IMG/VR virus record: IMGVR_UViG_3300034072_000758
Location: 372,001 to 436,000 of that record
Length of the DNA: 64,000 nt
Reading direction: 5' to 3' (one strand)
The notes beneath the pieces are model-generated. The model made no database searches and was not told the DNA's origin. It saw only the letters and a list, made by a program, of their open reading frames with translations. Below are positions 11,212 to 52,670 of this stretch, piece by piece; the stretch's first letter is position 1, and the number at the start of each line of letters is the position of its first letter. Both the position numbers and the translations under genes were made by a program.

Positions 11212-12210
11212 ATGACAAAAGCAAGTGAAATGATTGGCGATCCAAACGCCAGACTTATTCTCGACCACGGGTTTGTCCGTCTGGTTGATCATATGGGTAG
11301 CGACGGAGCCGTTGTCCAAGCCGCCCGAACCTCATATGGTGATGGTACTAAATCCGTATCCGCTGACACGGCCCTGATCCGTTATTTGATGCGTCACCAA
11401 CACACGTCTCCTTTTGAAATGTGTCAAGTGAAGCTTCATATCAAGATACCGATCTTCGTAATGCGTCAATTGGTTCGTCACCGCACAGCCTCACTGAATG
11501 AATATTCCGGTCGTTATTCTGTCATGACTGACGAGTTTTATGTGCCGGAAGATCATATGGTAAAGCCCCAGAGCCAAACCAATAACCAAGGCCGCGCCGG
11601 GGAACTTTCTGAAACAAATGTGGCTGGGGCGAAGTGGTTCATTCAGACAGCGAATGAAATGAGCTATGACATCTACAAGGCTCTCTTGGGACCAACGGAA
11701 GACACCGATAAGCGCGACGTGGTGTTTGATCCATATGACCCGAATGACCCGATGTTTGATCCCGATTTCAATGGCATCGCCCGCGAATTGGCCCGCACGG
11801 TTCTCCCGGTCAGTAATTACACCGAACTCTATTGGTGTCAAAATCTTCGCAATCTGTTCCATTTGATCAAACTGCGTTGGGATAAACATGCGCAGGAAGA
11901 AATTCGTATTTTGGCGAATGCTATCTATGATCTGGTTCTTCCTTTGTTCCCAGCCTCGGTCAAAGCATTTGATGATTATGTTCGTCTGGGTGTGTCTCTT
12001 TCCAGAATGGAAAAGGAAATCTTCGAGCGAATTATTGCTTCGACTGAATCCGCCAAGACTGTGTTCTCGCGCTGGTTGGTGGAAGCCGGTAGCGATAAAG
12101 TTTTCGCCGAGAAGAACGATCTTTCGGTTCGTGAATTGAAAGAGTTCGTTACTGAATGGAAGCTCCCGCTGTACGATGAAGCGGTAGAACATCTGGCCAC
12201 GCTGGCTTAA
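11212..12210 (+). CDS. thyX: Flavin-dependent thymidylate synthase
   Basis: RHRTASLNEYSGRY signature; HTSPFE; ELARTVLP. Confidence 0.97.
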   Translation: MTKASEMIGDPNARLILDHGFVRLVDHMGSDGAVVQAARTSYGDGTKSVSADTALIRYLMRHQHTSPFEMCQVKLHIKIPIFVMRQLVRHRTASLNEYSGRYSVMTDEFYVPEDHMVKPQSQTNNQGRAGELSETNVAGAKWFIQTANEMSYDIYKALLGPTEDTDKRDVVFDPYDPNDPMFDPDFNGIARELARTVLPVSNYTELYWCQNLRNLFHLIKLRWDKHAQEEIRILANAIYDLVLPLFPASVKAFDDYVRLGVSLSRMEKEIFERIIASTESAKTVFSRWLVEAGSDKVFAEKNDLSVRELKEFVTEWKLPLYDEAVEHLATLA

Positions 12211-12220
12211 TATAAAAAAG

Positions 12221-12242
12221 AAGGGGCCGAAAGGCCCCTTTT
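12221..12242 (+). terminator. Intrinsic terminator
   Basis: AAGGGGCC-GAAA-GGCCCCTTTT. Confidence 0.85.
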
Positions 12243-12408
12243 CAGTCGAAGTCGTAAGCAAAAAAGCAAGATCACAAGCAATCTTGTATTCGTATCCTAC
12301 CCGACATCGAAAAATAGTCAACTGAGAAAATACATTTAAATTGATTTTCTTTGTTCGACTCCGTTAATGTGGATTAACCATAATTCTTAAAAGAAGGATG
12401 AAAAGAAA

Positions 12409-12717
12409 ATGGCTCGCAAGAAGAAAGAAAAGATCAACGAGGTTAAGGAAATCCTGACCCCCGAAGATACCCGTCGCCTGAATGAGTACGTGGACGCTTC
12501 TCTGGCAATGTTCCTCGAAATTGACGACCGCAAGGAAGCTCAAACCGAGTTAGCTCAAAAGCTGGCCGAAGATTTCGGCTGGGAAAAGTCGGAAGTGATG
12601 GAAATCGCCAAGACCGCTTACAAGGGTTCCCTGCGTGACAAGGAACAAAAGATGGATCGTGTTCGCACGGCTCTGGAAGCTATTGGTCGCGGTTACGACT
12701 CCGAACAAGCCAACTAA
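12409..12717 (+). CDS. DsbA/GapR-like small DNA-binding protein
   Basis: Helical 102-aa protein (E..D.K....A.....ED.G.....V..IAK) directly upstream of the polymerase. Confidence 0.5.
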   Translation: MARKKKEKINEVKEILTPEDTRRLNEYVDASLAMFLEIDDRKEAQTELAQKLAEDFGWEKSEVMEIAKTAYKGSLRDKEQKMDRVRTALEAIGRGYDSEQAN

Positions 12718-12752
12718 ATATAACCCCATAACCGGACAGGTGGAATTTAAAT

Positions 12753-15524
12753 ATGTATGTTGACGCACTTTTTGATAGAAAAACCGATACTATTCTCGTA
12801 GCAGAGAGAGTAAATGGGGTGCGTGAGTTTGTTGAATACAGACCAGAACATACTCTTTATTATTACCATCCGTCCGGTTCTTCTCGATCCATCTTTGGTG
12901 ATCCACTTAAAAAGTTTGTCACCAACGATATGTTCAAGTTCAATAATGAACTGAAACGTCTACAAGACAAAGGCACCCAGATTTTCGAATCGGACGTGAA
13001 CCCGGTGTTCCGTTCTTTGGGTAAACACTACAAGGGCGTGGACTCTCCTGTCCTGAACGTTGCGTTTTTCGATATTGAGACCGACTTTCACAAGGAACGC
13101 GGGTTCGCCGACCCGAAAGACCCGTTCAATGCCGTTACCGCTATTACGGTCTATTTCAGCCATACCGAAAAGATGCACACGCTCGTGCTCAAGCCGCCCA
13201 CGGTCGATACCGAAGAGGCGTTCAAAATCTGTGCTGATTTTGAAGATACCGAGCTATACATCAACGAAGTCGATCTCTTGAAACGCTTTTTGGAAATGAT
13301 CGATGATGTTGACGTATTCACCGGCTGGAACTCTGAGACTTACGATATTCCATACACAGTAAACCGCATAGAGCGCCTTCTAGGTAAGGAAGCTCTCGCG
13401 GCCCTGTGTCTATGGGATAAGCTTCCGCGCGAACGCATTGTTATGAAGTTCAACAAGGAATATCAAACCTTTGATTTCCCCGGTCGCCCGCACTTAGATT
13501 ATCTGGAACTTTATAAGAAACATAACCCCCAACAGCTTCACAGCTATAAGCTGGATTTCGTATCCGAACATGAAGTTGGCGCGAACAAGACCAAATACAC
13601 CGGTACTCTGGATGATCTTTACAAAAAAGATTTTCGTCTGTTCATCGAATATAACAGAACTGACGTTGGCCTTCTTGTAAAGATCGATAAGAAGAAGAAA
13701 TTCTTGGACTTGGCCAACCAAGTCGCTCACGACAATGGTGTCGTTCTCCGCACGACTATGGGTTCGGTGGCGCTGGTCGAACAGGCTATTTTAAACGAGA
13801 TTCACGAAATGGGTCTCGTAGCACCAAATCGCCGCGTTGAAGAGGAAGAAATCGAAGACCTGTCCGATGATACGGATGGCTTCTACGACGATGAAGATGA
13901 TGATGACGGTGAAGACGATGGCAAGAAGCCGGTCGTTGGCGCTTATGTCGCGGTCCCGAAAGTTGGTATTCAAACCGACATCGGATGTATCGACATTAAT
14001 TCCCTGTATCCGTCTTGTATTCGCGCTTTGAATATGAGTCCTGAGACTCTGGCTGGACAGTTTATTCCGACTTATACGGACGCTTTTATCAATGAGCGTC
14101 TTGCTGTTCTACCTAAGAACAAGAAAGCCGACGCATGGGAAGGCGTGTTCTTCTGTAAAGAATACGGGCTGATCATGGATGAAGATACCGAGCATCCGAT
14201 CACGTTGGAAGCTCTGGATGGTCGTCATATCACGAAGACTGGTAAAGAGTGGTATGAGTTCATCTTTAATCCAGCCAACCATGTTTGTATCACTGCTAAC
14301 GGAACCTTGTTCAAAACGGACAAGGATGGGATCATCCCTGCCCTTTTGGCTCGCTGGTATTCCCAGCGTAAAGAGATGCAAAAGAATGAGCGTAAGTATA
14401 CGGACCTTCTTAAAGACCCGGATTTAGGTGAAGATCAGCGCAAGGAATACAAATTCCTCGAAGGTTTCTGGAACCAGCGCCAACAAGCACGTAAGATTTT
14501 GCTCAACTCCCTGTACGGCGCTCTGTTGAATGAAGGTCTGCGTTTCTATGACGCTCGTTTGGGTAAATCTGTTACTCTGACTGGACGTTCTATTGTCAAG
14601 CATATGAACTCCAAGATCAATGAAATCATTACCGGTGTATACGACTACAAGGGTGATGCGATCTTCTATTCAGATACCGACTCGTCATATTTCTCTGCCT
14701 ATCATTTCCGTGATCAATATCTTCCGTTGGAATGGAACCGAGATAACGTCATCGACATCTACGACATGATCTCGGATATGGTCAACGAGAGCTTTCCGGG
14801 TTTCATGAACAAGGCTTTCAACACCTCTATGGAGCGTGGTGGAGTTATTAAGGGTGGCCGCGAACTGGTGGCATCGAAGACGTTGTTCATTCGTAAGAAG
14901 AAGTATGCGGCCCTTATGTACGACAAAGAAGGGGATCGCTACGACCTTGACGGCAAGCCGGGTAAGCTGAAAGCGATGGGTCTTGATCTAAAGCGCGCCG
15001 ACACGCCGAGCTATATGCAAGACTTCCTCAAGGACATCCTAATGGGCGTCTTGACCGATACACCGATTGACGATCTGTACGAGCGCACCAAGCGATTCCG
15101 CGAAGAGTTCGTGGATAAGGACGGTTGGGAAAAAGGAACGCCCAAGGCAATCAAATCTTTCTCGGACTTCCTGAAACGCTTTGAAACGGGCGACACATCT
15201 AAAACAATTCCCGGCCACGTCCGCGCTGGGATCAATTGGAATCGCATGTGTGATGTTTATGATGATCGTTTTGCCATGCGTTGTACGGATGGCACCAAAG
15301 TTATCATGTGTGCGCTGAAAAAGAATGCTTTGGGTATGGAGCGTATCGCTTATCCGATTGACGAACCGCATTTACCAGACTGGTTCAAGGAGCTTCCATT
15401 TGATCATGAGGCGATGGAAGAAACCATTATCGATAAGAAACTCGATAACCTGATTGGTGTTCTTGAGTGGGACATCAATAAAACTAAGAATTTCATGGCC
15501 GAAGACCTGTTCGTGTTTGAATAA
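12753..15524 (+). CDS. Family B DNA polymerase (T4 gp43-like)
   Basis: ExoI FDIET; motif A DINSLYPS; motif B KILLNSLYG; motif C YSDTDS; KKKYA; acidic insertion before motif A. Confidence 0.97.
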   Translation: MYVDALFDRKTDTILVAERVNGVREFVEYRPEHTLYYYHPSGSSRSIFGDPLKKFVTNDMFKFNNELKRLQDKGTQIFESDVNPVFRSLGKHYKGVDSPVLNVAFFDIETDFHKERGFADPKDPFNAVTAITVYFSHTEKMHTLVLKPPTVDTEEAFKICADFEDTELYINEVDLLKRFLEMIDDVDVFTGWNSETYDIPYTVNRIERLLGKEALAALCLWDKLPRERIVMKFNKEYQTFDFPGRPHLDYLELYKKHNPQQLHSYKLDFVSEHEVGANKTKYTGTLDDLYKKDFRLFIEYNRTDVGLLVKIDKKKKFLDLANQVAHDNGVVLRTTMGSVALVEQAILNEIHEMGLVAPNRRVEEEEIEDLSDDTDGFYDDEDDDDGEDDGKKPVVGAYVAVPKVGIQTDIGCIDINSLYPSCIRALNMSPETLAGQFIPTYTDAFINERLAVLPKNKKADAWEGVFFCKEYGLIMDEDTEHPITLEALDGRHITKTGKEWYEFIFNPANHVCITANGTLFKTDKDGIIPALLARWYSQRKEMQKNERKYTDLLKDPDLGEDQRKEYKFLEGFWNQRQQARKILLNSLYGALLNEGLRFYDARLGKSVTLTGRSIVKHMNSKINEIITGVYDYKGDAIFYSDTDSSYFSAYHFRDQYLPLEWNRDNVIDIYDMISDMVNESFPGFMNKAFNTSMERGGVIKGGRELVASKTLFIRKKKYAALMYDKEGDRYDLDGKPGKLKAMGLDLKRADTPSYMQDFLKDILMGVLTDTPIDDLYERTKRFREEFVDKDGWEKGTPKAIKSFSDFLKRFETGDTSKTIPGHVRAGINWNRMCDVYDDRFAMRCTDGTKVIMCALKKNALGMERIAYPIDEPHLPDWFKELPFDHEAMEETIIDKKLDNLIGVLEWDINKTKNFMAEDLFVFE

Positions 15525-15580
15525 AATTGAAAAACCCGCAGTTATCTGCTAGTTTTTCTTTCGTGAGGTAAATAAAAAGT

Positions 15581-16312
15581 ATGCGTAACCAGTTGTTAGA
15601 TGTGCTCTCAAAGACAGCAAGACTCTTTGATGCTTTGAAATTCACAGTAAGTGGAGATCGTGAGATCACCATTATTGGTTGGGACACATCCCAACACCTT
15701 TTCGTTGTTGGTACATTGACCAATGATGTTCCTGAGTTTGCTGGTGATTTTGCGATCACCAACCTGAAACTCTTGGATGGTCTGTTGAATTTCCCCAACT
15801 ACAAGACTGATGACGCTGTTATCACTGCCAAGAAGCGCGAAATAGATGGTTCAACAACTATCGAGTCTTTGGAGTTCAGGAATCCAAAGACTAAAAACTT
15901 CTCGGATTTTCGTCTGAGAAACACGAAGCTGATGAAAACGCCAAAGATCGTGAAGCCCGATTGGGATGTCACGGTAACTCTGGATGCCGGTAAGCTGGCT
16001 GAGTTTGAAAAATTGGTTTCGCTGTACAAAGAGTTCGATAAAGACTTTGGCCTCCATATAAAAGATGGCGACCTCTATGCGACGATTGGCACACAATCCA
16101 GCGCCACCCAAAGCACACAAATGGTTTTGGTCGAAGGTGTGGATTCCGAACTCCGTTCTGGCTTGGTTTGGAGCATGGCTATGTTCCAAGCTGTTATCGG
16201 TCAGGTCGGCAAGACCCCCACCATTAAAGTAGCTCGTGGTGGCGTCATGTCCATTTCCACGAAATCCGAACATGGGGTCTACGAATATCTAATCAGAGCA
16301 AAGAGAGTATAA
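15581..16312 (+). CDS. Sliding clamp (gp45-like)
   Basis: 243 aa, DFAITNLKLLDGLL pattern, immediately after the polymerase. Confidence 0.6.
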   Translation: MRNQLLDVLSKTARLFDALKFTVSGDREITIIGWDTSQHLFVVGTLTNDVPEFAGDFAITNLKLLDGLLNFPNYKTDDAVITAKKREIDGSTTIESLEFRNPKTKNFSDFRLRNTKLMKTPKIVKPDWDVTVTLDAGKLAEFEKLVSLYKEFDKDFGLHIKDGDLYATIGTQSSATQSTQMVLVEGVDSELRSGLVWSMAMFQAVIGQVGKTPTIKVARGGVMSISTKSEHGVYEYLIRAKRV

Positions 16313-16318
16313 AATATA

Positions 16319-16864
16319 ATGTTTAAAATACCATTTAAATGGCTCCCAGCCGCATGGGGATTGAAAGGTAAGGCTTATAAGCAAGCCGAAGCCTATTACA
16401 ATTTCAAAGAGGGCGAAACTCTCGACCGTAAACTACTCGATATTGAGTTTGACGGTCAACCGCCAGAAGAGAAAGTTCTGGCACTAGACAAGAAGTATGG
16501 AAAGCTTTCGAGCTACGATTACGATCTTGAATTGATCGAGCAACAAGACTTGGACCTCGATAGTAAAAACCTTGCTATTCTCGAAGTGAAGAAGAAGCAC
16601 GGTAAAATTCAAGACTTTGAGTATCGCCGAGACAAAGCTGAAATTGAACAAGAGCCTTGGGTTGACATCATCGATCACGGTTTCGACCCGGAGCAAATGA
16701 TCAACGGTTTCTATATGTCGTTTGCTTGGAACTCTCATTGGATCGATCTTTTGAGACGCCACGGATACAACGGAAAGACCGAAGAAGAAATTATCGACCA
16801 GTGGTACACCGATGTGTGTAACAGTCAGGTCCAAAGCGTTTTAGACGGAAAAGAAGACGAGTAA
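16319..16864 (+). CDS. Conserved hypothetical protein
   Basis: 181-aa ORF in the replication operon. Confidence 0.65.
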   Translation: MFKIPFKWLPAAWGLKGKAYKQAEAYYNFKEGETLDRKLLDIEFDGQPPEEKVLALDKKYGKLSSYDYDLELIEQQDLDLDSKNLAILEVKKKHGKIQDFEYRRDKAEIEQEPWVDIIDHGFDPEQMINGFYMSFAWNSHWIDLLRRHGYNGKTEEEIIDQWYTDVCNSQVQSVLDGKEDE

Positions 16865-17979
16865 TGACTACCTACGCTATAGTTGACGTTGCTAACCTGT
16901 TTCATCGGGCCAGACATGCGGTGCGAGGCGACACGTTCACCAAAGCCGGAATGACCCTGAATATTATTTTCAGAAGCATCAAGAAACTATATCGTGACTT
17001 CAATGCCGATCACGTGGTTCTGTGTGCGGAAGGTCGTAGCTGGCGTTATGACCTTTTCCCAGAATACAAGATCAAGAGTAAGTTGAAGCGCATTAATCTG
17101 GATGCCAACGACAAAGAAGAAGAACAGATTTTCTACGACACAATGAATGAGTTCATTGAGTTTATGAGAACCCAATCTCGTTGTACAGTCCTTCAAGCCC
17201 AAGGCGTCGAAGGCGATGATTTCATGGCGCGCTGGACCCAACTTCACCCGGAAGATAATCATATCATATTGTCCGGCGATAACGATTTCCTTCAATTGGT
17301 ATCCGATAATGTTTCTCTCTATAACGGGATGGAAAATTACCATATAACCAGCAAGGGTGTGTTCAATGAAAAGCAACAGGAAATGTATTTCCTGATTTCG
17401 CCATCAGACGGTAAGCTGAAAGTAAAAGGCACCGTTGAGGACGTGCGTAAAAAGCATGAAAAGGACGAAAAAGCCAAGGTGAAAGCTGACCCCAATTATG
17501 AACCCACCCCATTTGAGTTCGCTCCCGAAAAAGAATGGTGGAAGAAAGCCCTATTCTTGAAGATCATTCGTGGTGATGCCAGTGATGGCATATTCTCAGC
17601 CTACCCCGGTGTTCGATATAATGGTTCCTCGAAGCGCGTGGGTATTCACGAAGCTTGGGAGGATCGTGAAGCCCAAGGATACGCATGGAATAACTTCATG
17701 CTCTCGACTTGGGAAAAGGCCGAATATGGTGGTGAAACCAAGACGGTTACAGTCAAGGAAGAGTTCGCGTTTAACGAAATGCTTATCGATTTGACTAAGC
17801 AACCTGATAACATCAAAGAGATCATGGATCACGCGATCATCCAAGCGGTCAATAAGCCAACGGTTTCTATGGTTGGAATCAATTTCACCCGTTTCTGTAA
17901 GAAGCATGAACTCCCGCTCTTGTCTAAGGAATCGGATTTCCACGCTCAATATCTGGGGGCTGGATATGGCCGCAATTAA
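16864..17979 (+). CDS. RNase H / 5'-3' exonuclease (T4 rnh-like)
   Basis: N-terminal IVDVANL, EGDD, SGDNDFLQL and IRGDASDGI motifs of the 5' nuclease family. Confidence 0.9.
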   Translation: MTTYAIVDVANLFHRARHAVRGDTFTKAGMTLNIIFRSIKKLYRDFNADHVVLCAEGRSWRYDLFPEYKIKSKLKRINLDANDKEEEQIFYDTMNEFIEFMRTQSRCTVLQAQGVEGDDFMARWTQLHPEDNHIILSGDNDFLQLVSDNVSLYNGMENYHITSKGVFNEKQQEMYFLISPSDGKLKVKGTVEDVRKKHEKDEKAKVKADPNYEPTPFEFAPEKEWWKKALFLKIIRGDASDGIFSAYPGVRYNGSSKRVGIHEAWEDREAQGYAWNNFMLSTWEKAEYGGETKTVTVKEEFAFNEMLIDLTKQPDNIKEIMDHAIIQAVNKPTVSMVGINFTRFCKKHELPLLSKESDFHAQYLGAGYGRN

Positions 17980-19392: not shown

Positions 19393-19455
19393 TCGAAGTC
19401 TCCTATATTTTGTATTACTCAACTCTACTATAAATCCAATAAATGTCAATGTATG

Positions 19456-19484
19456 TTGACAGCATAAAAACAAAATATTATACT
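19456..19484 (+). promoter_or_regulatory. Sigma70-type promoter
   Basis: TTGACA-17-TATACT; predicted start site coincides with ATG 19491. Confidence 0.75.
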
Positions 19485-19490
19485 GCGCCT

Positions 19491-20051
19491 ATGAAAATGA
19501 TAGATAGTGAAAATCCCGCATCTGTAAAATTACAGAAAGACGCATTTGAGTTCGCTGCGACCGCGCACCGTTCGATTAATCAACTGCGTAAGTATACCCA
19601 GACGCCGTATGAAGGTCATCCCTTTGCGGTGGGTCAAATGCTGATCAATCTGGTTCCAGAAGCAACACCGGAAGATGTCGCATCCGCGTATTTACATGAC
19701 GTGGTTGAAGATACTCCCGTGAAGATCGAAGAAATCTATGAGAAGTTTGGTCCGGTGGTTGGACAAAACGTTGATGGCTTGACTGACGTAAGCAAGCCAG
19801 AAGACGGCAACCGCAAATTCCGTAAGGAAATGGACAAAGAACATACTCTGGAACAACCAGTCAATGTTCTGAACATCAAGCTGGTGGACTTTCTTCATAA
19901 CCAAGAGAGTATCTTGGAATATGACCCGGACTTTGCGACCGTGTGGTGTCGTGAAAAGGCCAAGATTATCTTCGATCCGAGGATGGATAAGGCGTCTCCG
20001 GTCCTTCTGGAAAAGGCTCGTAACGCATTCAGGTCGTGGTACAAAGCTTGA
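19491..20051 (+). CDS. HD-domain small alarmone hydrolase (RelA/SpoT/Mesh1-like)
   Basis: AFEFAATAH...Q.RK....PY..HP..V...LHDVVEDT...KLVDFLHN. Confidence 0.85.
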   Translation: MKMIDSENPASVKLQKDAFEFAATAHRSINQLRKYTQTPYEGHPFAVGQMLINLVPEATPEDVASAYLHDVVEDTPVKIEEIYEKFGPVVGQNVDGLTDVSKPEDGNRKFRKEMDKEHTLEQPVNVLNIKLVDFLHNQESILEYDPDFATVWCREKAKIIFDPRMDKASPVLLEKARNAFRSWYKA

Positions 20052-20106
20052 CAATACTTTGATCCTATACTATAAGTGTGGGGAAACTAATATAAAGGGA
20101 CATTTT

Positions 20107-21018
20107 ATGGACTATATCTTCGACATCGATGGTACTATTGCGGACGTTAAGCACCGCTTACACTTCATCGAGAATGGTAATCGTGACTGGCCGGGGTTCT
20201 TCAAGGCCATGATTCACGACTCGCCTATCGTTGATATGTTTACGATGGCCCATGAATTGAAAAAGGCTGGCGGAAACATTTTGGTTTCGACCGCGCGCCC
20301 CGATGACTATCAGCAAGAGACTATCGACTGGATGGTTGCTTTGGGCTTCCCATACGACAAGCTGTATATGCGCGCGGCTGGTGACTTCCGCCGCGACAGC
20401 ATTGTCAAGGAAGAACTGCTGTTACAGATGGTTCAAGACGGCTATGATCCGAAGGTCGCATTCGATGACAAGGTTAATGTTATCGAAATGTACCGCAACA
20501 ACGGTCTGATCGCTTTACAGTGCGACGCTGACGCCGAGAAGATCAGCCCGTATGCTGGTCAAACTCTGCTTCACGTTCTGGTCGGGCCTTCGGGCGCGGG
20601 TAAGTCTACGTATATCGCCAAGAACTACAAGGAAACCGATGTGGTGTCTTCGGACGGCATTCGTCTCTGGTTGTTCGGTGATTTTGATACGGCGCATACC
20701 CCGGAAAATTTGAAGCGTACTTGGTCTACGGTCTATGCGTTCGTCGCTGCCCGTCTGGCGAATGGTATTTTCACGGTTCTCGATGCGACCAACATCAAGG
20801 CCAAGGATCGTCTGGAAGTTTTCAAGCATGTCCCCAAGGGCGTTCTCGTGAACTACATTCTGATTGATCGTCCTCTGGATGATAAGCTGCGGGATCGTGG
20901 CTGGCGTCCTGAGTCTTTGGTGTTGAAGCACCACAAGACTTTCCAGTCGTCCGTTAAGTCGGCTCTGGCTGGGGATGACCGCCCTGACGTGTTCGTATTC
21001 GATAAGCGTGAAAAGTAA
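20107..21018 (+). CDS. Polynucleotide 3'-phosphatase / 5'-kinase (Pnk-like, HAD then P-loop)
   Basis: FDIDGT HAD motif, RAAGDFRRDSIVKEE, FDD; GPSGAGKST and VLDATN kinase motifs. Confidence 0.85.
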   Translation: MDYIFDIDGTIADVKHRLHFIENGNRDWPGFFKAMIHDSPIVDMFTMAHELKKAGGNILVSTARPDDYQQETIDWMVALGFPYDKLYMRAAGDFRRDSIVKEELLLQMVQDGYDPKVAFDDKVNVIEMYRNNGLIALQCDADAEKISPYAGQTLLHVLVGPSGAGKSTYIAKNYKETDVVSSDGIRLWLFGDFDTAHTPENLKRTWSTVYAFVAARLANGIFTVLDATNIKAKDRLEVFKHVPKGVLVNYILIDRPLDDKLRDRGWRPESLVLKHHKTFQSSVKSALAGDDRPDVFVFDKREK

Positions 21019-22172
21019 TGTATATTTCGCAAGAACAGGTGGATGCCTATCTCGCCAAAGTGGATTTATCCGACAGCGAGAATGGTGTCCACGCCATCAA
21101 TATCATCAAGGACCGGGTTATTCAGGCAATTTCTGAATGGTCCGGCCTTGAACCGGCTGTGATTAATCCAGACCCAATCGTTGAAGTCTCAGATAACTTC
21201 GACAATTTGTATTATGACGAGAACGCCATCGCGCGTGACCCTCGTTATACGCATTATGTCGATGCTCACCACATTTTCCGTACCCAAATGACATCGGCTA
21301 TTCCGCCGTTCCTGAGAAAGTACGCCAGATCATACACGGGCCTCGACACATCCTTGTTCCTTGCGGCACACGGGCTGGTCTATCGCCGGGATGTTATCGA
21401 CCGCACCCATGTGGGTGAACCACACCAATTGGACCTATGGGTTCTGAATCGGTCGCGCCGCTTGAATCGGAATGATCTGGTGGATATGATCGGTGTGGTT
21501 TTGAACACATTGCTTCCCGGCTGTAAATATCGTTGTAATGAGACCTATCACCCATACACTATCAATGGTCTCGAAGTTGAAGTGTGGTTTGGTACGGAAA
21601 AGACAGGGCGGTGGGTGGAAGTATTAGAATGTGGTGAAGCGCACCCTTGGCTTCTGGACGATACCTATATGAACAGCAGACATGACCGTTGGACCGGCCT
21701 TGCTATGGGTATCGGTCTGGATCGTCTGTGTATGCTTCTCAAGGGCATTGATGACATTCGCCTGTTGCGCAGCACGGACCCTCGCGTGGCCGTTCAGATG
21801 GCGAACCTTAAGCCGTACAAGGGAGTCAGTAAGCAACCGGCCATCAACCGCGATATGTCTCTGTGCGTTCAAGAAGTCGATATGGAAAATATCGGCGGTC
21901 GTGTCCGTGAGGCTCTTGGCGAGCGCGCCGATTGGTTGGAAGAAATCGAGCTTCGTAAGGATTTCTCTTATGATGAAATACCCGATCAGGCGCGGGAGCG
22001 TCTGGGTATCCAACCGGGTCAGCGCAATATTCTGTTGCGTTTGATCCTGCGTTCCCCCACCGATAGCATTCCCAAAGAAATTGGGAATGAAATTTATGAC
22101 ATCGTATACCGAGTCATTAACGAAGGAGCCGGGGGATACGAAATAAAATACTCTGGAAAAGGAAAAGAATAA
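21018..22172 (+). CDS. Single-chain PheS-like class II ligase with C-terminal anticodon-binding (FDX-ACB-like) domain
   Basis: FRTQMTS; motif 2 GLVYRRDVIDRTH..PHQLD; HPYTINGLEVE; WVEVLECG; motif 3 GLAMGIGLDRLCML; C-terminal INRDMSL..LR.ILRS. Confidence 0.8.
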   Translation: MYISQEQVDAYLAKVDLSDSENGVHAINIIKDRVIQAISEWSGLEPAVINPDPIVEVSDNFDNLYYDENAIARDPRYTHYVDAHHIFRTQMTSAIPPFLRKYARSYTGLDTSLFLAAHGLVYRRDVIDRTHVGEPHQLDLWVLNRSRRLNRNDLVDMIGVVLNTLLPGCKYRCNETYHPYTINGLEVEVWFGTEKTGRWVEVLECGEAHPWLLDDTYMNSRHDRWTGLAMGIGLDRLCMLLKGIDDIRLLRSTDPRVAVQMANLKPYKGVSKQPAINRDMSLCVQEVDMENIGGRVREALGERADWLEEIELRKDFSYDEIPDQARERLGIQPGQRNILLRLILRSPTDSIPKEIGNEIYDIVYRVINEGAGGYEIKYSGKGKE

Positions 22173-22173: not shown

Positions 22174-22578
22174 ATGTCTCAACCACCGTATGCTACGATT
22201 ACCGCTCACAAGGGTCACCTTGTCTGTGAACTTCTGGTAGATGGTGACGTTCCCGGTGCCGTAGCGTCCAGTATCAATAACCCCGGTCGTTTCGGTCAGG
22301 TTATCATGGACACCAGTATCCATCTGGGTATTTCGGCAGAAGCCGTTGCGCTTCTGAAAACGATCAAGCGCGGGAGGGACGCTATCGGTGATGTCGATTG
22401 GTTCACCACGGCGGACGGTAAGGCGGCGTTTTGTTGGATTGGTGGTCCAAAGGCTCTGATCCGAGTCGAAGGGGCTGTTGGTTCTCGTGAATATATCGGC
22501 GCTACTAATATCGAGGGTAAGTACGTGCTCGTAGCCAATGATGTTCCAGCCGAAGCCATAGAAGCCATCGAAGCATAG
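22174..22578 (+). CDS. Hypothetical protein
   Basis: 134-aa ORF closing the operon. Confidence 0.65.
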   Translation: MSQPPYATITAHKGHLVCELLVDGDVPGAVASSINNPGRFGQVIMDTSIHLGISAEAVALLKTIKRGRDAIGDVDWFTTADGKAAFCWIGGPKALIRVEGAVGSREYIGATNIEGKYVLVANDVPAEAIEAIEA

Positions 22579-23007: not shown

Positions 23008-23739
23008 ATGAGTAATACTTTAGTAACCGCATGGTTTGATATTGGTAGAGTAAATTGGAACCAACACTCAAGAAGCGCGGAAGAATATATCGACCGATTT
23101 TCTAATCTAGCAAAGCTAGATACCAATTTGATAATTTACACTACCCGCAATTACGCGGGTAGACTTGAGAAGATCAGAGCCGATAACGGATTCTCGAATT
23201 TGACGAAAGTTGTAATCGTTGAATTTCCCGATCCAAAGTACGCCGATATATTAAAAGCTATTGAAGAAACCCAACAACATCCTGATTTCACTAAGCATTT
23301 AATGGCTGATGTTACAGGTCTCCCTCAGTATCAATATCCCGAATACGTGCTCGTTACTACCCTCAAGTCCTCATTCGTGGCGGATGCCATTGAACGTGGG
23401 TTAGTAACCACCGAACATGCCACTTGGGTAGATTTCGGCTTCATGGTGACACCATCAACTGAACTGGTTATCCCACCATTGTATCCTGAGCATATTTCAG
23501 CTTTTCCGCTCGAAGAAATCGCGGACCCGGATGCGTTCATTTATGACTCTATCGTCAATGCGTATTCAACACCGTCCACCAAATTATTCACAGCCCCGGT
23601 AACCATGTGGCGTTCATTATCAGATGAAATGCTTATTGCTTTGGAACTGGTGCTTGAAAATGGAATGGTGGCCAAAGATACCGTTCTGTTTTCCATTTGT
23701 AACATTAAATTCCCGCATGTTTTTGAGAGCAATCGATAA
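23008..23739 (+). CDS. HtrL/YibB-like glycosyltransferase-related protein
   Basis: TLVTAWFDIGR N-terminus; K..FVADAI; WVDFG. Confidence 0.65.
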   Translation: MSNTLVTAWFDIGRVNWNQHSRSAEEYIDRFSNLAKLDTNLIIYTTRNYAGRLEKIRADNGFSNLTKVVIVEFPDPKYADILKAIEETQQHPDFTKHLMADVTGLPQYQYPEYVLVTTLKSSFVADAIERGLVTTEHATWVDFGFMVTPSTELVIPPLYPEHISAFPLEEIADPDAFIYDSIVNAYSTPSTKLFTAPVTMWRSLSDEMLIALELVLENGMVAKDTVLFSICNIKFPHVFESNR

Positions 23740-25115
23740 TGAATAAGCTTGTAATATTTGATCTTGACGGTGTTTTGCTTGATAGCCGAGAACTCCATTA
23801 TGAATCGCTCAACGCGGCCTTAGCCAAGGTTGGCCAAGAATATATCATCACCCGCGACGAACACCTGAGCCTGTACGATGGCCTCAACACCACGAAGAAG
23901 CTTCGTATGCTCACCGAGCGTAAGGGCCTCCCAGCGGGCTTACACCAGCAAGTATGGGAAGACAAGCAAGCGGCCACCTTTGACCTGATCAAGCGCTTCC
24001 CACTGTCTCCCAAGGCCGTACAAGCGTGTCAGGAGATTAAGAAACGCGGCTGGAAGATCGCCGTGGCCTCCAACAGCATCCGCGAGACTGTAAAGCTGGC
24101 TTTGATGGCTATTGGTATCATGGAATATGTAGACGTGTTCGTAAGCAACGAAGACGTGACCCGGACGAAGCCTTACCCGGAAATGTATTGGCAAGCTATG
24201 ACCAAATTGAACGCCTTGCCCCGCAACACCATCATCTGTGAAGACTCACACATTGGCCGACAAGGCGCGCTGGATTCGGGTGCTAATCTGTTACCTATCG
24301 AAAATTCAGAGACTTGGACCGTCTCTGACATAACAAATCTTATTCAAGAAGTGGAAAACAAATCTATGGAACGCATTGCGTGGATTGATAAAAAGCTCAA
24401 CGTTCTTATCCCGATGGCGGGCGCTGGATCGCGCTTCGCCGATGCGGGCTATACCTTCCCTAAGCCTCTGATCGAGGTCCGTGGTAAGCCGATGATACAA
24501 GTGGTCGTTGAGAATCTTAACATACAAGCTAATTATATTTTCGTGGTCCAGAAAGCGCACTATGAAAAATATGATCTGGAACATGTGCTGAATAACATTG
24601 CCCCCGGCTGTAAGATTATTCAGACCGATGGCTTGACCGAAGGCGCTGCCTGTACTGCCCTGCTGGCCAAGGAATATATCGACAACGATGCCCCGCTGTT
24701 TTTTGCCAACTCGGATCAATTTGTGGAATGGAACAGCAATGAAGTCCTGTATGCCTTCAACGCGGATGGGATCGACGGTGGTATCGTTACGTTCGATGCC
24801 AATCACCCGAAATGGTCTTATGCCAAGGTAGGCGAAGATGGTTTTGTTTCGGAAGTTGCTGAGAAGAAAGTAATCTCCAACGATGCTACGGTCGGCTTCT
24901 ATTGGTGGAAACAAGGTTCGGATTTTGTAAAATATGCCGAACAAATGATAGAAAAGAATATCCGTGTCAACAATGAGTTCTATGTTTGCCCGGTATTTAA
25001 TCAGGCTATCGAAGACGGTAAGAAGATTCGTGTCAAGAAGACCGATGGTATGTGGGGGATCGGAACGCCGGAAGACCTCAACACCTTCTTGGAAAACTAC
25101 AAGGGTAAAATTTAA
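23739..25115 (+). CDS. Fused HAD phosphatase + sugar-nucleotidyltransferase
   Basis: FDLDGVL / KPYPE / EDS HAD motifs; IPMAGAGSRF...PKPLI nucleotidyltransferase motif; GIGTPEDL. Confidence 0.9.
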   Translation: MNKLVIFDLDGVLLDSRELHYESLNAALAKVGQEYIITRDEHLSLYDGLNTTKKLRMLTERKGLPAGLHQQVWEDKQAATFDLIKRFPLSPKAVQACQEIKKRGWKIAVASNSIRETVKLALMAIGIMEYVDVFVSNEDVTRTKPYPEMYWQAMTKLNALPRNTIICEDSHIGRQGALDSGANLLPIENSETWTVSDITNLIQEVENKSMERIAWIDKKLNVLIPMAGAGSRFADAGYTFPKPLIEVRGKPMIQVVVENLNIQANYIFVVQKAHYEKYDLEHVLNNIAPGCKIIQTDGLTEGAACTALLAKEYIDNDAPLFFANSDQFVEWNSNEVLYAFNADGIDGGIVTFDANHPKWSYAKVGEDGFVSEVAEKKVISNDATVGFYWWKQGSDFVKYAEQMIEKNIRVNNEFYVCPVFNQAIEDGKKIRVKKTDGMWGIGTPEDLNTFLENYKGKI

Positions 25116-31765: not shown

Positions 31766-31794
31766 AAAAGGCGGGGAACTTCCCCGCCTTTTTT
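31764..31794. terminator. Bidirectional intrinsic terminator
   Basis: AAAAAAGGCGGGG-AACTT-CCCCGCCTTTTTT. Confidence 0.9.
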
Positions 31795-33148
31795 ATAGTA
31801 TAAGTCTCCAAAGAGCGTTCGAAAACACACCTTCGAGGGGTAATATCCATTCTCCATCTACCCACTTAAGCTGTTTGTTATTGTGGTTATTCACAACAAA
31901 CTCTTCGTCAGGGCTTGTGGCTGCGGAGAATACGACTTCCCAATGATTGTTGACATATTGAATTATGTCATTTTCTTTAGCGGTCAGAGCACCCCATGCT
32001 TGAGATACGCCGCCGATGTCGTTGAGAAGCAGATAGCGTTGGCCATTTACTTCCGGTGGAAGCTTCTGGTTTGGGTAGGTTTCCATCGGGTTGATTACCG
32101 CATCAATGGGCGGCAATGTATTCGACGGAAGAGTCATTGGGTCAATTGACCAGTACAGAACACTAGGATCGTTCGTATATTCGATTGTTCCCAAAATACC
32201 AGTTCTGTCATCAACCTTCGCGGTAAGTAATATTTGGCTTGCTGCTGGTCGCAATACCCCAAAAGTGCTGATCAATTTGCGCCACGAATATGGATCACCA
32301 TTTTCATCAACTTCACTTGCTTTCGGCCCCAATAGCTTCATGCGATTACCGCTAATCATGACAGAGTGGTTACCAAGTGTTTCAACGACATAACCCATAT
32401 CGGTTGACAGCATGTCGCCCCCATCCATTATAACCCCCGGAATAGGAGCACTGTCGGTCATGTTGGTAATGACGCGCTCGATCAGCTTTTGTTCCGTGAC
32501 CAAGGCCGGTGGAGATAGCCAGAATTTAATCTTGAGCGTAATCGACGCGATGTCGATTTCGTCAGATGAACCGATAGGAATACTGCGCGAAGACAGAGTA
32601 AGGTCCGGGTCTGGGGTACAGAGCGTAATAGCACCCCAATCCAATGGGTTCTCGCTATTTTGAATTTGGAAATCGGGATAGATTGCTAAACCAATTTGTT
32701 CGAGTATCTGTTGTTTTTGATCCCAATTGCTCGTCCAAAGATCGACCTGAATAGTCATTTCAAACGGTAATGGCATCAGGCGACGAACGGAATACGAACG
32801 CCCGCGATCCCCGGTGTATTGTCCGGTCTGTTCATCGAAATGGCGTTCGGTCACTTGAACGGTGCTCTCGTGTGTTGGGTTCTGTAAGTCTTCACGGCTA
32901 AAGCGCAAGCCGGTTTGGAAAACAGTGATCATCGGACACACGTTCAGAGCCGATTCGCTTTGGTTTCGGATAATGTTTGCTACAACTTCGTTCGTAATAG
33001 CCATGCGGCAAGGCACAGATTTAAGCTCAGGCTCCAAATCACCACGACGCCCGGTCATGTATTGGTAACCTGAGAAAGCACGAACAATTTGTTCTAGGTA
33101 GCGGACTTGCTGACGATCATAAAAATAATCGATCTTAGTGATTGCCAT
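31793..33148 (-). CDS. Tail completion / sheath stabilizer protein (T4 gp15-like) with C-terminal extension
   Basis: YFYD.Q..RY......FS; PLPFEMTIQVDLWTSNWDQKQQILEQI; WLSPPA. Confidence 0.7.
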   Translation of the reverse strand: MAITKIDYFYDRQQVRYLEQIVRAFSGYQYMTGRRGDLEPELKSVPCRMAITNEVVANIIRNQSESALNVCPMITVFQTGLRFSREDLQNPTHESTVQVTERHFDEQTGQYTGDRGRSYSVRRLMPLPFEMTIQVDLWTSNWDQKQQILEQIGLAIYPDFQIQNSENPLDWGAITLCTPDPDLTLSSRSIPIGSSDEIDIASITLKIKFWLSPPALVTEQKLIERVITNMTDSAPIPGVIMDGGDMLSTDMGYVVETLGNHSVMISGNRMKLLGPKASEVDENGDPYSWRKLISTFGVLRPAASQILLTAKVDDRTGILGTIEYTNDPSVLYWSIDPMTLPSNTLPPIDAVINPMETYPNQKLPPEVNGQRYLLLNDIGGVSQAWGALTAKENDIIQYVNNHWEVVFSAATSPDEEFVVNNHNNKQLKWVDGEWILPLEGVFSNALWRLIL

Positions 33149-33151
33149 TTA

Positions 33152-33487
33152 TTACTCCTTTGGAGCTTCTGGCTCGCTCTTTTGCTCATCATCTTGGTCG
33201 TTGTCAAACTCGACTTCGCCCGACAATACGCCATTGCTCAGAGAAATCTTTTCGATCTTCCCAAAAGCCAGTGTCACGACAATAACACCAATAAGTCCCA
33301 GAACAATCCAGAGGCCAACAGCCAAAGCATTCACTCGACCTTCGGCGGCGGTTTCTGGCCACGGAAGGTAAGCGATGCTGGCGATGATCCAAGACGCAAG
33401 GGCGGTAACCACCATACCCGCGCCTAAAAGGATAGCGAATGTGATCAGTTGAAGCTTGCGTAAAGCGTTTATAATTTTATCCCACAT
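33152..33487 (-). CDS. Two-TM membrane protein
   Basis: Two hydrophobic segments and an acidic C-terminus; late operon. Confidence 0.6.
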   Translation of the reverse strand: MWDKIINALRKLQLITFAILLGAGMVVTALASWIIASIAYLPWPETAAEGRVNALAVGLWIVLGLIGVIVVTLAFGKIEKISLSNGVLSGEVEFDNDQDDEQKSEPEAPKE

Positions 33488-33499
33488 TCGCGTATTTCC

Positions 33500-33826
33500 T
33501 TATTCTTCGTCTACGAGTTTACGGCCTTTCTTTTCGGCAGTCTTTGGTGTTTGCTTTTCAACAGGAGCGGCAGCAAGCTTCTTGATAGCTTCTGCTGGCG
33601 ATTCAAAGAAATCATCACCCATGTCCTTTATGGAAACTTGTCTGACCTTTACGGCCTTCGGGTTATGCTTGTTGTACTTCTGAGCTTCGGCAGTCAGAAC
33701 TTCACCACGCGCACCAATCAGGTCGCCACGAGCGTTCATTTTACCATTACCCAGAGCAATGGCATTGGGATTGGCGGCGATCAAAGCGGCCATGTTTACT
33801 TGTCTACCTTTGAGAGACTTAGCCAT
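33500..33826 (-). CDS. Conserved hypothetical protein
   Basis: 108 aa, MNARGDLIG motif. Confidence 0.65.
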   Translation of the reverse strand: MAKSLKGRQVNMAALIAANPNAIALGNGKMNARGDLIGARGEVLTAEAQKYNKHNPKAVKVRQVSIKDMGDDFFESPAEAIKKLAAAPVEKQTPKTAEKKGRKLVDEE

Positions 33827-33856
33827 AGTAATTAATACCTCAATATTGTGTACTAT

Positions 33857-33864
33857 TATTTATA
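33857..33864 (-). promoter_or_regulatory. T4-type late promoter TATAAATA
   Basis: Exact T4 late consensus upstream of the operon containing the tail-completion gene. Confidence 0.6.
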
Positions 33865-33983
33865 TGAAAATAGTCCCCTAGATTTCGATGAAATTTTTAA
33901 TTACCGATTTAAATTGAAAAATATAGTTAATATTTGGTAGGATCGATTTCGACTAGATAATTGGCACCCAAAAAACAAGCACC

Positions 33984-35441
33984 ATGAGCAAAGAAGCAAC
34001 TCTCAAGATTTTGGACGAAGTGAACGTCAAATTTGACGGCCTCGATCCTTCCACTCGTCGCAAGATTAGTGACGCATGTAAGTATTTCATGCCCTATGCG
34101 CGCCACACCCCCCTATTCAAGTTAGGACGCTGGGATGGATATGTTAACTTCGCTACTGTTGGTGGTGGAACATATCTCAATCTTCTTGAGCAAGTCTTAC
34201 CTATCGTAGTTGAAGAGGGCTACGATCTCAAGCTCGATGATCGACGGGTCAATTACAATTTCGATTTCAAGCCAATTGGAACGGATTTCCTTTCGGATAC
34301 TCTTTGGCCGGAAGGTCACCGTTTCGCGGGCGAACCGATCATGCTGCGTGAAGATCAGGTAGAGGCCGTCAATCGATACCTTGCCAACCCTCATGGCATC
34401 CAGTGTCTCTCTACGGGGTTTGGTAAGACGATCCTCTCCGCCACATTGTCAAAGATTGTGGAGCCTTATGGTCGATCAATTGTGATCGTCCCGTCTAAGA
34501 CACTTGTTGAACAGACCGAAGAAGATTTTAAGAACATCGGTCTTGATGCTGGTGTGTTTTTCGGTGACCGCAAAGAATGGAATAAGACCCACACGATTTG
34601 TACATGGCAATCACTTTCTGTGCTCACAAAGAAAACTCGCCGCGATGAAGTGGAATGTACGATCCACGATTTCCTAGATGGCGTGATCGCAGTTCAAGTG
34701 GACGAATGCCACGGCCTGAAAGCCAACGAGCTTCGTGATGTAATGTGTGGTCCTATGGCCAATGTGCCAATCCGCTGGGGAATGACCGGCACTATTCCAA
34801 AGCAAGACTTCGAGCGAGTGTCCTTACAAATTACCATCGGTGGTGTCGTTGGCGAAGTTCGGGCTAAAGAACTTCAAGACGCCGGGTTCCTGTCAAAATG
34901 TGAGATCAACATTCTTCAAACTGAGGATGATCATGTGTCGTTCGCGGCCTATGACAAGGAATATAAATTCCTGACATCAGACGAAGATAGGTTGCGCTGG
35001 ATTGGTGAACTCGCCAATAGCCTAGAAGGCAACACGTTGGTTCTTGTCAATCGCATTGAAACTGGCAAGTCCTTGACGGCCATGATCGATAATGCGGTAT
35101 TCGTCTCTGGTGGGATGAAAACTAAAGCGCGCAAAGAAGAGTTCAAGGACACTAACCAATCGGACAACAAAACCCTTGTGGCAACATTCGGGGTTATGTC
35201 TACGGGTGTGAATATCCCGAAGATTCACAATCTCATTCTGGTAGAATGCGGCAAGTCGTTTGAGCGTACTATTCAGTCGGTAGGCCGTGTTCTTCGCCGT
35301 GCTGATGGTAAAAGCAAAGCTGACATCTACGATGTGTGCTCTACGCTCAAGTTCTCCAAGAAGCATCTTACCGAGCGTAAGAAGTATTACAAGGAAGCTG
35401 AATACCCATTCAAGATCACGAAAGTGAAATACAATGCGTAG
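33984..35441 (+). CDS. uvsW: UvsW-like superfamily 2 DNA helicase
   Basis: Walker A STGFGKT, DECH, GMTGT, STGVNIP, QSVGRVLR. Confidence 0.92.
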   Translation: MSKEATLKILDEVNVKFDGLDPSTRRKISDACKYFMPYARHTPLFKLGRWDGYVNFATVGGGTYLNLLEQVLPIVVEEGYDLKLDDRRVNYNFDFKPIGTDFLSDTLWPEGHRFAGEPIMLREDQVEAVNRYLANPHGIQCLSTGFGKTILSATLSKIVEPYGRSIVIVPSKTLVEQTEEDFKNIGLDAGVFFGDRKEWNKTHTICTWQSLSVLTKKTRRDEVECTIHDFLDGVIAVQVDECHGLKANELRDVMCGPMANVPIRWGMTGTIPKQDFERVSLQITIGGVVGEVRAKELQDAGFLSKCEINILQTEDDHVSFAAYDKEYKFLTSDEDRLRWIGELANSLEGNTLVLVNRIETGKSLTAMIDNAVFVSGGMKTKARKEEFKDTNQSDNKTLVATFGVMSTGVNIPKIHNLILVECGKSFERTIQSVGRVLRRADGKSKADIYDVCSTLKFSKKHLTERKKYYKEAEYPFKITKVKYNA

Positions 35442-35868
35442 GCACGGCTATTTCCTTACCATGAGTAAAACACAACGAGAAATCTATGTCGAGCGCGTCT
35501 TGCCGGTAGATGAAGAAATTGTGTTTCCTATTTTGGTGGAAATAGCCCCTCAACTTCCTGAGATACAGGAAAACAAGTTTTACTACTATATCATGAAGGG
35601 AAAGGCGAGAATTGCTTTCATCACAAAGCGCCTCGATAACATGTGTGTGGGGAGATATATTCTCAAGGATGGAAAATGGTCAGCCCCGACTTGTTTCAAA
35701 AACGAATGCTTCGCGCGAGGTCGATCATTGACCGCTATTCTTCCGCCGTTTCTGATAGACGAAGAATGGGCTAAAGAAGTCGCGGACAAGTCAGTATATG
35801 GGCGTTCTAAAGCTTTATCTCTGGCGGACTTGGAACGCATTGGTGGTGGTACTCCCGACCAGAATTGA
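35434..35868 (+). CDS. Hypothetical protein
   Basis: 144-aa ORF; 3' end overlaps the antisense tRNA-Glu. Confidence 0.55.
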   Translation: MRRHGYFLTMSKTQREIYVERVLPVDEEIVFPILVEIAPQLPEIQENKFYYYIMKGKARIAFITKRLDNMCVGRYILKDGKWSAPTCFKNECFARGRSLTAILPPFLIDEEWAKEVADKSVYGRSKALSLADLERIGGGTPDQN

Positions 35869-35921
35869 ACTGGCACTCTCCGCTTGAAAGGCGGGCGTCA
35901 TGACCATTAGACCACGGGAGC
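35847..35921 (-). tRNA. tRNA-Glu(UUC), third in transcript
   Basis: Cloverleaf GCTCCCG..CTTTCAA..TTCAATT..GGGAGT-A-CCA. Confidence 0.92.
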
Positions 35922-35945
35922 ATAGTCAACAAAGTGTTAAATTGT

Positions 35946-36020
35946 TGGTACTCCCAACGGGATTCGAACCCGTGTCGCCGGATTGAAAGTCCAGCATCCT
36001 GACCACTAGAAGATGGGAGC
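35946..36020 (-). tRNA. tRNA-Glu(UUC), second in transcript
   Basis: Cloverleaf, loop CTTTCAA, encoded CCA. Confidence 0.92.
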
Positions 36021-36053
36021 ATAGAAAATCAAAAGCCCGATCTCTCGTTCTTT

Positions 36054-36127
36054 TGGTACTCCCTACGGGAATCGAACCCGCGTTGTCAGATTGAAAGTCT
36101 GTTGTCCTGCCATTAGACGAAGGGAGC
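36054..36127 (-). tRNA. tRNA-Glu(UUC), first in transcript
   Basis: Cloverleaf, loop CTTTCAA, encoded CCA. Confidence 0.92.
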
Positions 36128-52349: not shown

Positions 52350-52421
52350 GCCACGATAGCTGAGAAGGATTAGCGGCTGTCTGAAAAGCAGTAGAGAGAC
52401 GTTCGATACGTCTTCGTGGCA
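52350..52421 (+). tRNA. tRNA-Phe(GAA), atypical D-loop
   Basis: GCCACGA/TCGTGGC acceptor; loop CTGAAAA. Confidence 0.85.
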
Positions 52422-52422
52422 C

Positions 52423-52496
52423 AGTAGATTAGCTCAGTCTGGTAGAGCACACGCTTGATAAGCGTTAGGTCACTGGTTCAAATCCAGTATCTACTA
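52423..52496 (+). tRNA. tRNA-Ile(GAU)
   Basis: Cloverleaf; loop TTGATAA. Confidence 0.9.
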
Positions 52497-52497
52497 C

Positions 52498-52594: not shown

Positions 52595-52668
52595 GTAGCC
52601 GTAGCTCAGTCTGGTAGAGCATCTGGTTGAAACCCAGAGTGTCAGTGGTTCAAATCCACTCGGTTACA
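52595..52668 (+). tRNA. tRNA-Phe(GAA), second copy
   Basis: Cloverleaf; loop TTGAAAC. Confidence 0.9.
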
Positions 52669-52670
52669 CT

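Follow-up and report, generated by a model that had tools for sequence, protein, structure and literature searches.

We analysed a gene of the virus record IMGVR_UViG_3300034072_000758 of IMG/VR that encodes a single-chain PheS-related ligase, called SrmL after the protein family described below. It lies in a window of 64,000 nucleotides (positions 372,001 to 436,000 of the record), to which all positions given without a contig name refer. The record comprises 516,805 bp with direct terminal repeats, so that the source virus is a complete huge phage (~517 kb) and the gene is phage-encoded, as a preliminary description of the DNA had stated. The gene (21018..22172, plus strand) is an intact open reading frame (ORF) that starts with ATG and ends with TAA, and its 384 codons are present exactly as described there. 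The product combines a class II PheS-type catalytic core (residues 23-259, 21084..21794, plus strand; PF01409, E 2.8e-31) with a C-terminal ferredoxin-fold anticodon-binding (FDX-ACB) domain (residues ~271-366, 21828..22115, plus strand), the latter assigned from PF03147, the fold match and the alignment. When the C-terminal 123 residues were compared with PF03147, the score was 20 bits (E 9e-4), under the cutoff of 31.1 bits; the same model reaches 34 bits in the SrmL family member P0106. In canonical phenylalanyl-tRNA synthetase (PheRS), a ferredoxin-fold anticodon-binding domain is found at the end of the beta subunit.

The fold of the protein was predicted by AlphaFold2 with 30 homologs as input (mean pLDDT 92.6, pTM 0.88). 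As determined by Foldseek, the best match of this model in the PDB is human mitochondrial PheRS (3cmq), which aligns over the whole chain (E 3.6e-26, TMq 0.73, 399 columns). The top matches are 3cmq and its mutants, in the closed conformation, with TMq values of 0.72-0.73 over 388-399 columns. Bacterial PheS alpha chains align to the model over the core only (240-275 columns). The earlier proposal of a catalytic domain fused to an anticodon-binding-like domain in one chain, with the architecture of mitochondrial PheRS, is thus borne out by the PF01409 core, the PF03147 match and the full-length fold match. Like the mitochondrial-type enzyme (PheRS-M; human FARS2, 3cmq, TIGR00469), SrmL consists of a PheS-type core, a short linker and an FDX-ACB domain, without a beta subunit and without an editing domain. 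With bacterial PheS it shares the homologous core (PDB matches at E 1e-17), whereas the N-terminal coiled coil is absent.

The architecture had also been likened to that of SrmL-like ligases, and the protein is in fact a formal member of the family: it scores 416.3 bits on the NCBIfam model NF051887 ('PheS-related mystery ligase SrmL'), for which the curated cutoff is 300, and the match spans model positions 3-349 of 349. The search of the phage genome with the same model gave 416.2 bits, and none of the 14 control genomes passed the cutoff. All three models of established PheRS types were failed, namely that of mitochondrial PheRS (TIGR00469, 114.3 bits, cutoff 258), that of bacterial PheS (TIGR00468, 95.7 bits, trusted cutoff 237) and that of archaeal PheS (62 bits, cutoff 350). 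In an alignment of 30 members, 49 columns are invariant, and all 49 residues are present in the phage protein. The signatures YRRD, H.GEPHQ.D.W, HPYT, LECG, GLAxGxGLDR, RDxS, RLG and N337 are specific to SrmL and occur neither in PheS nor in PheRS-M. The phage copy shares the full-length match, all invariant residues and the two-domain architecture with the rest of the family; it differs in being phage-borne and in having short insertions in three loops (after residue ~100, at 192-195 and at 219-220).

A word search found 4,970 relatives of SrmL at E <= 1e-10, with a top identity of 50-60%, and a pattern scan in which each species was represented by one genome identified at least 508 species with a relative. 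The hosts include Alphaproteobacteria, Myxococcota, Nostocales cyanobacteria, Actinomycetes, Longimicrobia, Patescibacteria, Chloroflexota and Gammaproteobacteria. SrmL is strongly conserved across these many phyla, its distribution is patchy, and copies are also found in huge phages. The window gene adds a new, phage-borne member to a family that has a name but no assigned function, and membership therefore does not explain the role of the enzyme. A search of the literature found neither the name 'SrmL' nor a bacterial monomeric PheRS under another name. In reviews, the monomeric form of PheRS is regarded as specific to organelles and as the sole monomeric class II synthetase (PMC3275996, PMC12525003).

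The relationship to the known enzymes was analysed in a maximum-likelihood tree of the catalytic core that comprised 30 SrmL, the canonical PheS of ten SrmL-bearing genomes, and PheRS-M from giant viruses and an alveolate. The PheRS-M set was seeded from a giant-virus gene in contig L010. This gene (L010:9917-11017) and a second giant-virus gene (L009:2-1051) encode true monomeric mitochondrial-type PheRS with FPFT, FHQME and an FDX-ACB domain, and are related to the Klosneuvirus enzyme. The unrooted tree contains three clans, SrmL (100/100), PheS (100/97) and PheRS-M (94/94), which meet at one node. The stems measure ~1.6 changes per site for SrmL, ~1.2 for PheS and ~0.7 for PheRS-M, values flagged by the program as long branches that meet. 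SrmL is nested in neither PheS nor PheRS-M, and the unrooted tree names no sister pair. In this phylogeny, which had been proposed in the preliminary description, the window copy lies inside the SrmL clan (100/100), apart from both other groups. It groups with alphaproteobacterial SrmL and with the copies of phages of 415, 570 and 578 kb (88/77). The branching within the clan disagrees with the species phylogeny, indicating that horizontal transfer is frequent. We conclude that, within the PheS lineage, SrmL forms an old branch of its own. A descent of mitochondrial PheRS from SrmL was also considered; three clans that meet at one node of a tree unrooted without an archaeal or eukaryotic outgroup speak neither for a sister relationship of the two nor against it.

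SrmL is an accessory enzyme and not a replacement for canonical PheRS. Canonical PheS was present in all ten SrmL-bearing bacterial genomes tested (250-350 bits on PF01409), and PheT in all five tested for it. Four Patescibacteria with genomes of ~1 Mb encode PheS and PheT next to each other, alongside SrmL, so that SrmL does not replace PheRS in these tiny genomes. In the phage genome itself, the sole match to the PheT model TIGR00472 scored 12.5 bits, a chance level, and no second PF01409 gene was found. One Patescibacteria genome of ~0.8 Mb (G002) carries a tandem pair of SrmL genes (L106:217-1392 and L106:1531-2658). The second copy is degenerate in motif 2 and motif 3, and retains the Glu equivalent to E204 as well as HPY.

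To assign residues of the active site, roles were mapped from the M. tuberculosis (Mt) PheRS structures (PMC8136816) and the Safro review (PMC3275996) on a three-way alignment of SrmL, PheS and PheRS-M. Mt Arg201, His209, Gln215, Glu263, Glu279 and the motif 3 Arg bind the adenylate (PMC8136816). Their counterparts are kept in SrmL: R123 of motif 2 (Mt R201), H131 (H209, one face of the adenine site), Q137 (Q215), E186 (E263) and E201 (E279), both in the Mg/ribose site, and R236 of motif 3 (A229...R236). R123, H131, Q137, E201 and R236 are invariant in the 30 members, and E186 is nearly so. The motif 2 and motif 3 residues, whose loss the preliminary description had regarded as an argument against ligase activity, are consequently in place, and the Mg/ATP ligands are intact. 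Two further positions are kept: A229 is the equivalent of E. coli A294, and T181 that of E. coli T251. SrmL has both in common with bacterial PheS, as it does the arginines of motifs 2 and 3, the Gln and the Mg-binding Glu residues. The network that holds the alpha-amino group is likewise retained (RT[HQ]T[TS], Q137 and D139, the latter replacing Glu). Outside these residues, the active site is family-specific. PheS and PheRS-M have HPAR, DT[FY], FHQxE(G), FPFTxPS and LGCG in common, and PheRS-M keeps the PheS versions of these signatures (HPAR, DTY, FHQME, FPFT, LGCG), whereas SrmL does not. Invariant changes include Asp139 in place of Glu217, accompanied by the family-specific W141, and there is a hydrophobic change to Ala/Ile208 in place of Val286.

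The C-termini of SrmL were aligned with PheT B8 and with the PheRS-M domains, and contacts were taken from published structures (PMC8136816). Mt beta'Asp745 contacts the riboses of A36 and A37, and beta'Ser747 bonds to N6 of A35 (PMC8136816). The beta1 motif RDxS, which provides both residues, is kept in SrmL: D279 corresponds to Mt beta'Asp745 (Tt D696) and the invariant S281 to beta'Ser747. The position of Tt S742 is occupied by the invariant Asn337. Unlike PheRS-M, SrmL carries an additional insertion in this domain's beta2-beta3 loop. Judging from the residues retained, binding of a tRNA via its anticodon loop is plausible, while the recognition of position 34 is not readable from the SrmL sequence.

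The distance between SrmL and the nearest tRNA-Phe(GAA) genes was determined in the phage loci. In four of these, SrmL is flanked by tRNA-Phe genes on both sides, at 8 and 312 nt (L003), 163 and 213 nt (L007), 96 and 322 nt (L112/113), and 7 and 385 nt (L115). A tRNA-Phe gene is located at 121 nt in L006, 665 nt in L114 and 1,223 nt in L116, so that the distance is at most 1.3 kb in all seven loci, where SrmL lies inside tRNA arrays. In the more distant phage L008 it is ~8 kb, and in LR745206.1 no tRNA-Phe gene was found within 12 kb. In four of five lineages of the subclade to which the window copy belongs, the tRNA nearest to SrmL, or the next nearest, is tRNA-Phe (~0.02, a post hoc hand calculation). 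Since the phages with this arrangement are related to each other, we regard the adjacency as suggestive conserved synteny. A gene for a GNAT acetyltransferase of ~150 aa is found 0.4-1.8 kb away from SrmL in one phage lineage (L003:10851-11315, L112:12140-12586, L113:6079-6525) and in one bacterial contig (L005:7166-7618), which could be chance. Odd tRNA-like genes are present in the SrmL phage contigs L008 (1832-1906) and L116 (1443-1514); one has a four-base anticodon (GGAA) and stands beside two tRNA-Phe genes, the other has a two-base anticodon according to ARAGORN.

The window phage itself carries the two divergent tRNA-Phe(GAA) genes that had been reported, one of them with an unusual D-loop. 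Copy 1 (52350..52422, plus strand; ARAGORN, Rfam RF00005 52.2 bits) has a C32/A38 anticodon loop and an atypical D-arm, with a G13-U22 pair, purines at positions 16 and 17 and U at 21; its variable loop has 4 nt. The Rfam score of this copy falls within the range of its neighbours (49.7-70 bits). Copy 2 (52595..52669, plus strand; ARAGORN, Rfam 68.4 bits) has a canonical body (U20, A73) and an anticodon arm that we term class B (G30-C40, G31-C39, U32, C38). A G34-A38 purine stack was proposed as a recognition element for PheRS (PMC8136816), and C38 of the class B arm interrupts this stack. A full CCA end is encoded by neither of the two genes and by most of the related phage copies. Altogether, the phage has 57 tRNA genes, which cover all 20 amino acids and include a CUA suppressor. 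Sixteen anticodons occur twice or three times, and the 20 pairs with the same anticodon are 51-82% identical, with a value of 56.6% for the Phe pair. The phage thus looks as if it carried two divergent tRNA sets.

The anticodon arms of 16 phage tRNA-Phe genes were compared. A near-identical arm (YYGG-UUGAAAC-CCRR) on divergent bodies is common to the copies downstream of SrmL in L003, L007, L112 and L115, to the single copy of L114 and to copy 2 of the window. IMG/VR was then scanned with one exact 15-mer variant of the class B arm (CCGG-UUGAAAC-CCGG), which was found in the tRNA-Phe of 34 records on contigs of 4-415 kb (among L120-L193, e.g. L120:3164-3236). Only one of these records, the 415-kb phage, has SrmL; the arm occurs in 33 viral records without it, 17 of which have a completeness of at least 90%. 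The class B tRNA-Phe as an SrmL-specific partner is therefore rejected.

SrmL is part of a tightly packed, co-directional run of four genes on the plus strand. The run starts with HD_4, a RelA/SpoT-type HD hydrolase (19443..20051; PF13328, 43 bits, cutoff 27.2), followed by a polynucleotide kinase-phosphatase (PNKP) with a HAD phosphatase and a P-loop kinase domain (20104..21018; PF25109 E 1.4e-24, PF13671 E 2.3e-14, PHROG polynucleotide kinase). The TAA stop codon of the PNKP gene overlaps the ATG of SrmL (TAATG), and orf134 (22174..22578; no Pfam match, function not assigned) starts 1 nt after the SrmL stop codon. Homologs of HD_4 were found by tblastn 4-7 kb from SrmL in three related phages (L003, L006, L007). 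For orf134 there are only four homologs, in phage contigs without SrmL nearby, and it was discarded as a conserved partner. The PADLOC models of defence systems gave no match for SrmL, HD_4, PNKP, orf134 or a 334-aa ORF on the minus strand. Elsewhere, the phage carries at least five other aminoacyl-tRNA synthetase-type (aaRS-type) genes and three genes of the RNA ligase family PF09414 (G000:C1:49442-49894, 346269-346841 and 70826-71287). A T4-type PNKP acts together with an RNA ligase to repair cleaved tRNAs, and RelA/SpoT-type HD hydrolases can reverse the toxin-made pyrophosphorylation of tRNA 3' ends. The RNA ligases and the PNKP beside SrmL would complete a pathway for the repair of tRNA breaks. 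Given these roles, a tRNA-maintenance setting for SrmL is a reasonable inference from the analogy with known enzymes.

We propose, with moderate confidence, that SrmL is an editing-free single-chain accessory synthetase that activates Phe or a close aromatic analogue by adenylation and loads it onto tRNA-Phe beside the host enzyme. According to this proposal, SrmL would convert an aromatic alpha-amino acid, Phe or a close analogue, to the aminoacyl-adenylate and would transfer the aminoacyl group to a tRNA held through the anticodon loop, most probably tRNA-Phe(GAA). Having no beta subunit, it would have no editing site either. In the phage, SrmL appears to be translationally coupled to PNKP and may be one part of a large toolkit for translation and tRNA maintenance (57 tRNAs, aaRS genes, PNKP and RNA ligases), in which it could sustain the charging of Phe-tRNA without relying on the host alpha2beta2 enzyme.

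Several observations weigh against this proposal. SrmL has its own invariant versions of the shared PheS motifs (no HP, RYT, PHQxDxW, HPYTxxG, LECG). The adenine-stacking Phe213 is replaced by Pro135, the ring-wall phenylalanines (Mt F255/F257, Tt F258/F260) by H178 and Y180, and Gly282 at the floor of the pocket by Glu204, all of them invariant. This family-specific conservation of the active site argues for a different substrate or chemistry. In the anticodon-binding domain, the pocket for G34 is remodelled: SrmL does not conserve the FDxY motif (Tt D729, Y731), and the insertion in the beta2-beta3 loop, which is the G34-binding loop, adds 10 family-specific residues (A-R-x-R-L-G; R328 and G330 invariant). 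Tt R780 is kept only in the alphaproteobacterial and phage subclade, and the window protein has Ile-Lys here. The genomic context does not favour a link to tRNA-Phe throughout the family. When the ORFs of 80 bacterial SrmL loci were clustered, no neighbour was conserved across phyla, with synteny only at the level of Nostocales, and no tRNA-Phe gene was located within 10 kb at any of the 80 loci; bacterial SrmL lies, among other places, in a prophage-like region, on a repABC plasmid and in plain chromosome. The adjacency to tRNA-Phe is confined to related phages. It is not significant in a rank-sum permutation over six lineages (P = 0.32), and in the window phage the distance is 31 kb. Finally, the literature search found no biochemical data on any SrmL member.

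The main alternative is that SrmL loads an amino acid other than Phe (hydroxylated, aminated or another polar aromatic one) onto tRNA-Phe or another tRNA with A35, for recoding or for a tRNA-dependent non-ribosomal reaction. It would account for the invariant polar residues H178 and E204 of the cavity, together with D139 and W141, none of which occurs in PheS or PheRS-M, and for a G34-binding loop that is remodelled next to preserved A35-A37 contacts. The presence of SrmL beside a complete canonical PheRS even in ~1-Mb Patescibacteria suggests a non-redundant role as well. However, human cytosolic PheRS differs at the four cavity positions of H178, Y180, E204 and Ala/Ile208 (N410, Y412, N434, F438) and still selects Phe (PMC3275996, PMC8136816), which makes the SrmL sequence compatible with Phe, and no biosynthetic or transferase partner is conserved at the 80 loci. 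As far as the sequence goes, it supports adenylate formation with an alpha-amino acid; Phe would be compatible, and a polar aromatic analogue would be equally allowed. On balance, we consider this alternative unlikely.

SrmL might also act without tRNA, as a ligase like EpmA/PoxA, AsnA or the amino acid:carrier-protein ligases, and reuse the ferredoxin-fold domain for another partner. There is precedent for such tRNA-independent roles among aaRS paralogues. EpmA/PoxA, GluQRS/YadB, HisZ, AsnA and the carrier-protein ligases resemble SrmL in that they are stand-alone accessory aaRS cores with family-specific active sites and a patchy distribution across phyla. The degenerate motif 1 (HPAR), the loss of the adenine-stacking Phe and of canonical G34 contacts, and the missing tRNA linkage at bacterial loci would fit this idea. 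These paralogues generally have no anticodon-binding domain, whereas every SrmL member retains one, with D279, S281 and N337 invariant at tRNA-contacting positions; moreover, the phage copies are embedded in tRNA arrays and no acceptor-protein gene is conserved nearby at the 80 loci. We therefore judge a tRNA-independent ligase improbable. The preliminary description had suggested yet another arrangement, an orthogonal pair of a Phe-specific enzyme with the odd-D-loop tRNA-Phe, copy 1. The two divergent genes and the atypical D-arm gave rise to this idea, but divergent duplicates with the same anticodon are common in this phage, the identity of the Phe pair is typical of them, and the tRNA-Phe copies beside SrmL in the relatives are of types other than copy 1. 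As copy 2 has the arm that recurs in SrmL-free viruses, neither copy can count as a private partner of SrmL, and the orthogonal pair is not supported; we regard it as very improbable. The alteration of motif 1 and of the adenine-stacking Phe could even indicate a non-catalytic relic or regulator, a pseudo-synthetase like HisZ. This is extremely improbable, given that the phage protein has every family-invariant residue, including the catalytic Arg and Glu, that the intact ORF shows translational coupling to the adjacent genes, and that the family is so strongly conserved over many phyla.

The distribution of SrmL has consequences for the view of monomeric PheRS. The monomeric design is not confined to organelles; it is patchy but widespread in bacteria and also occurs in huge phages. 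The tRNA-Phe(GAA) genes beside phage SrmL are the first contextual clue to the substrate of the family, for which a residue-level map of kept and changed positions in the active site and the anticodon-binding domain is now available. If the substrate is Phe, SrmL would be a compact editing-free bacterial PheRS that is relevant to the origin of the mitochondrial enzyme. If it is not, SrmL and a phage tRNA would form a natural aaRS/tRNA pair, which would be of interest to work on the genetic code. A more far-reaching idea is that monomeric PheRS-like enzymes have a lineage in bacteria and phages, SrmL, whose domain fusion is held in common with mitochondrial PheRS, and that in huge phages SrmL forms a phage-controlled charging system with the adjacent tRNA-Phe, either for a non-canonical aromatic amino acid or for a host-independent supply of Phe-tRNA. 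We consider this distinctly unlikely; if the fusion were shared, the 'mitochondria-only' monomeric design would have arisen in bacteria or their phages.

Further features were noted in the phage. The tRNA genes of the window are located at 35847-36127 and 52350-62714, and several in the array abut with spacers of 0-1 nt. The tRNA with the CUA anticodon ('Pyl' according to ARAGORN) lies outside the window (G000:C1:117291-117364). The genes analysed here read open under table 11, and stage-specific read-through of TAG is a possibility. Downstream of the SrmL run, at 23008-25115, an HtrL/YibB-family protein and a fused HAD phosphatase/sugar-nucleotidyltransferase are encoded, which suggests a sugar-nucleotide pathway in the phage. 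Around the run, the regions 11212-17979 and 31793-35441 encode ThyX, a family B DNA polymerase, a 5'-3' exonuclease and a DEAD/ResIII helicase as well as a T4 gp15-like tail sheath stabiliser, which points to the backbone of a T4-like myovirus.

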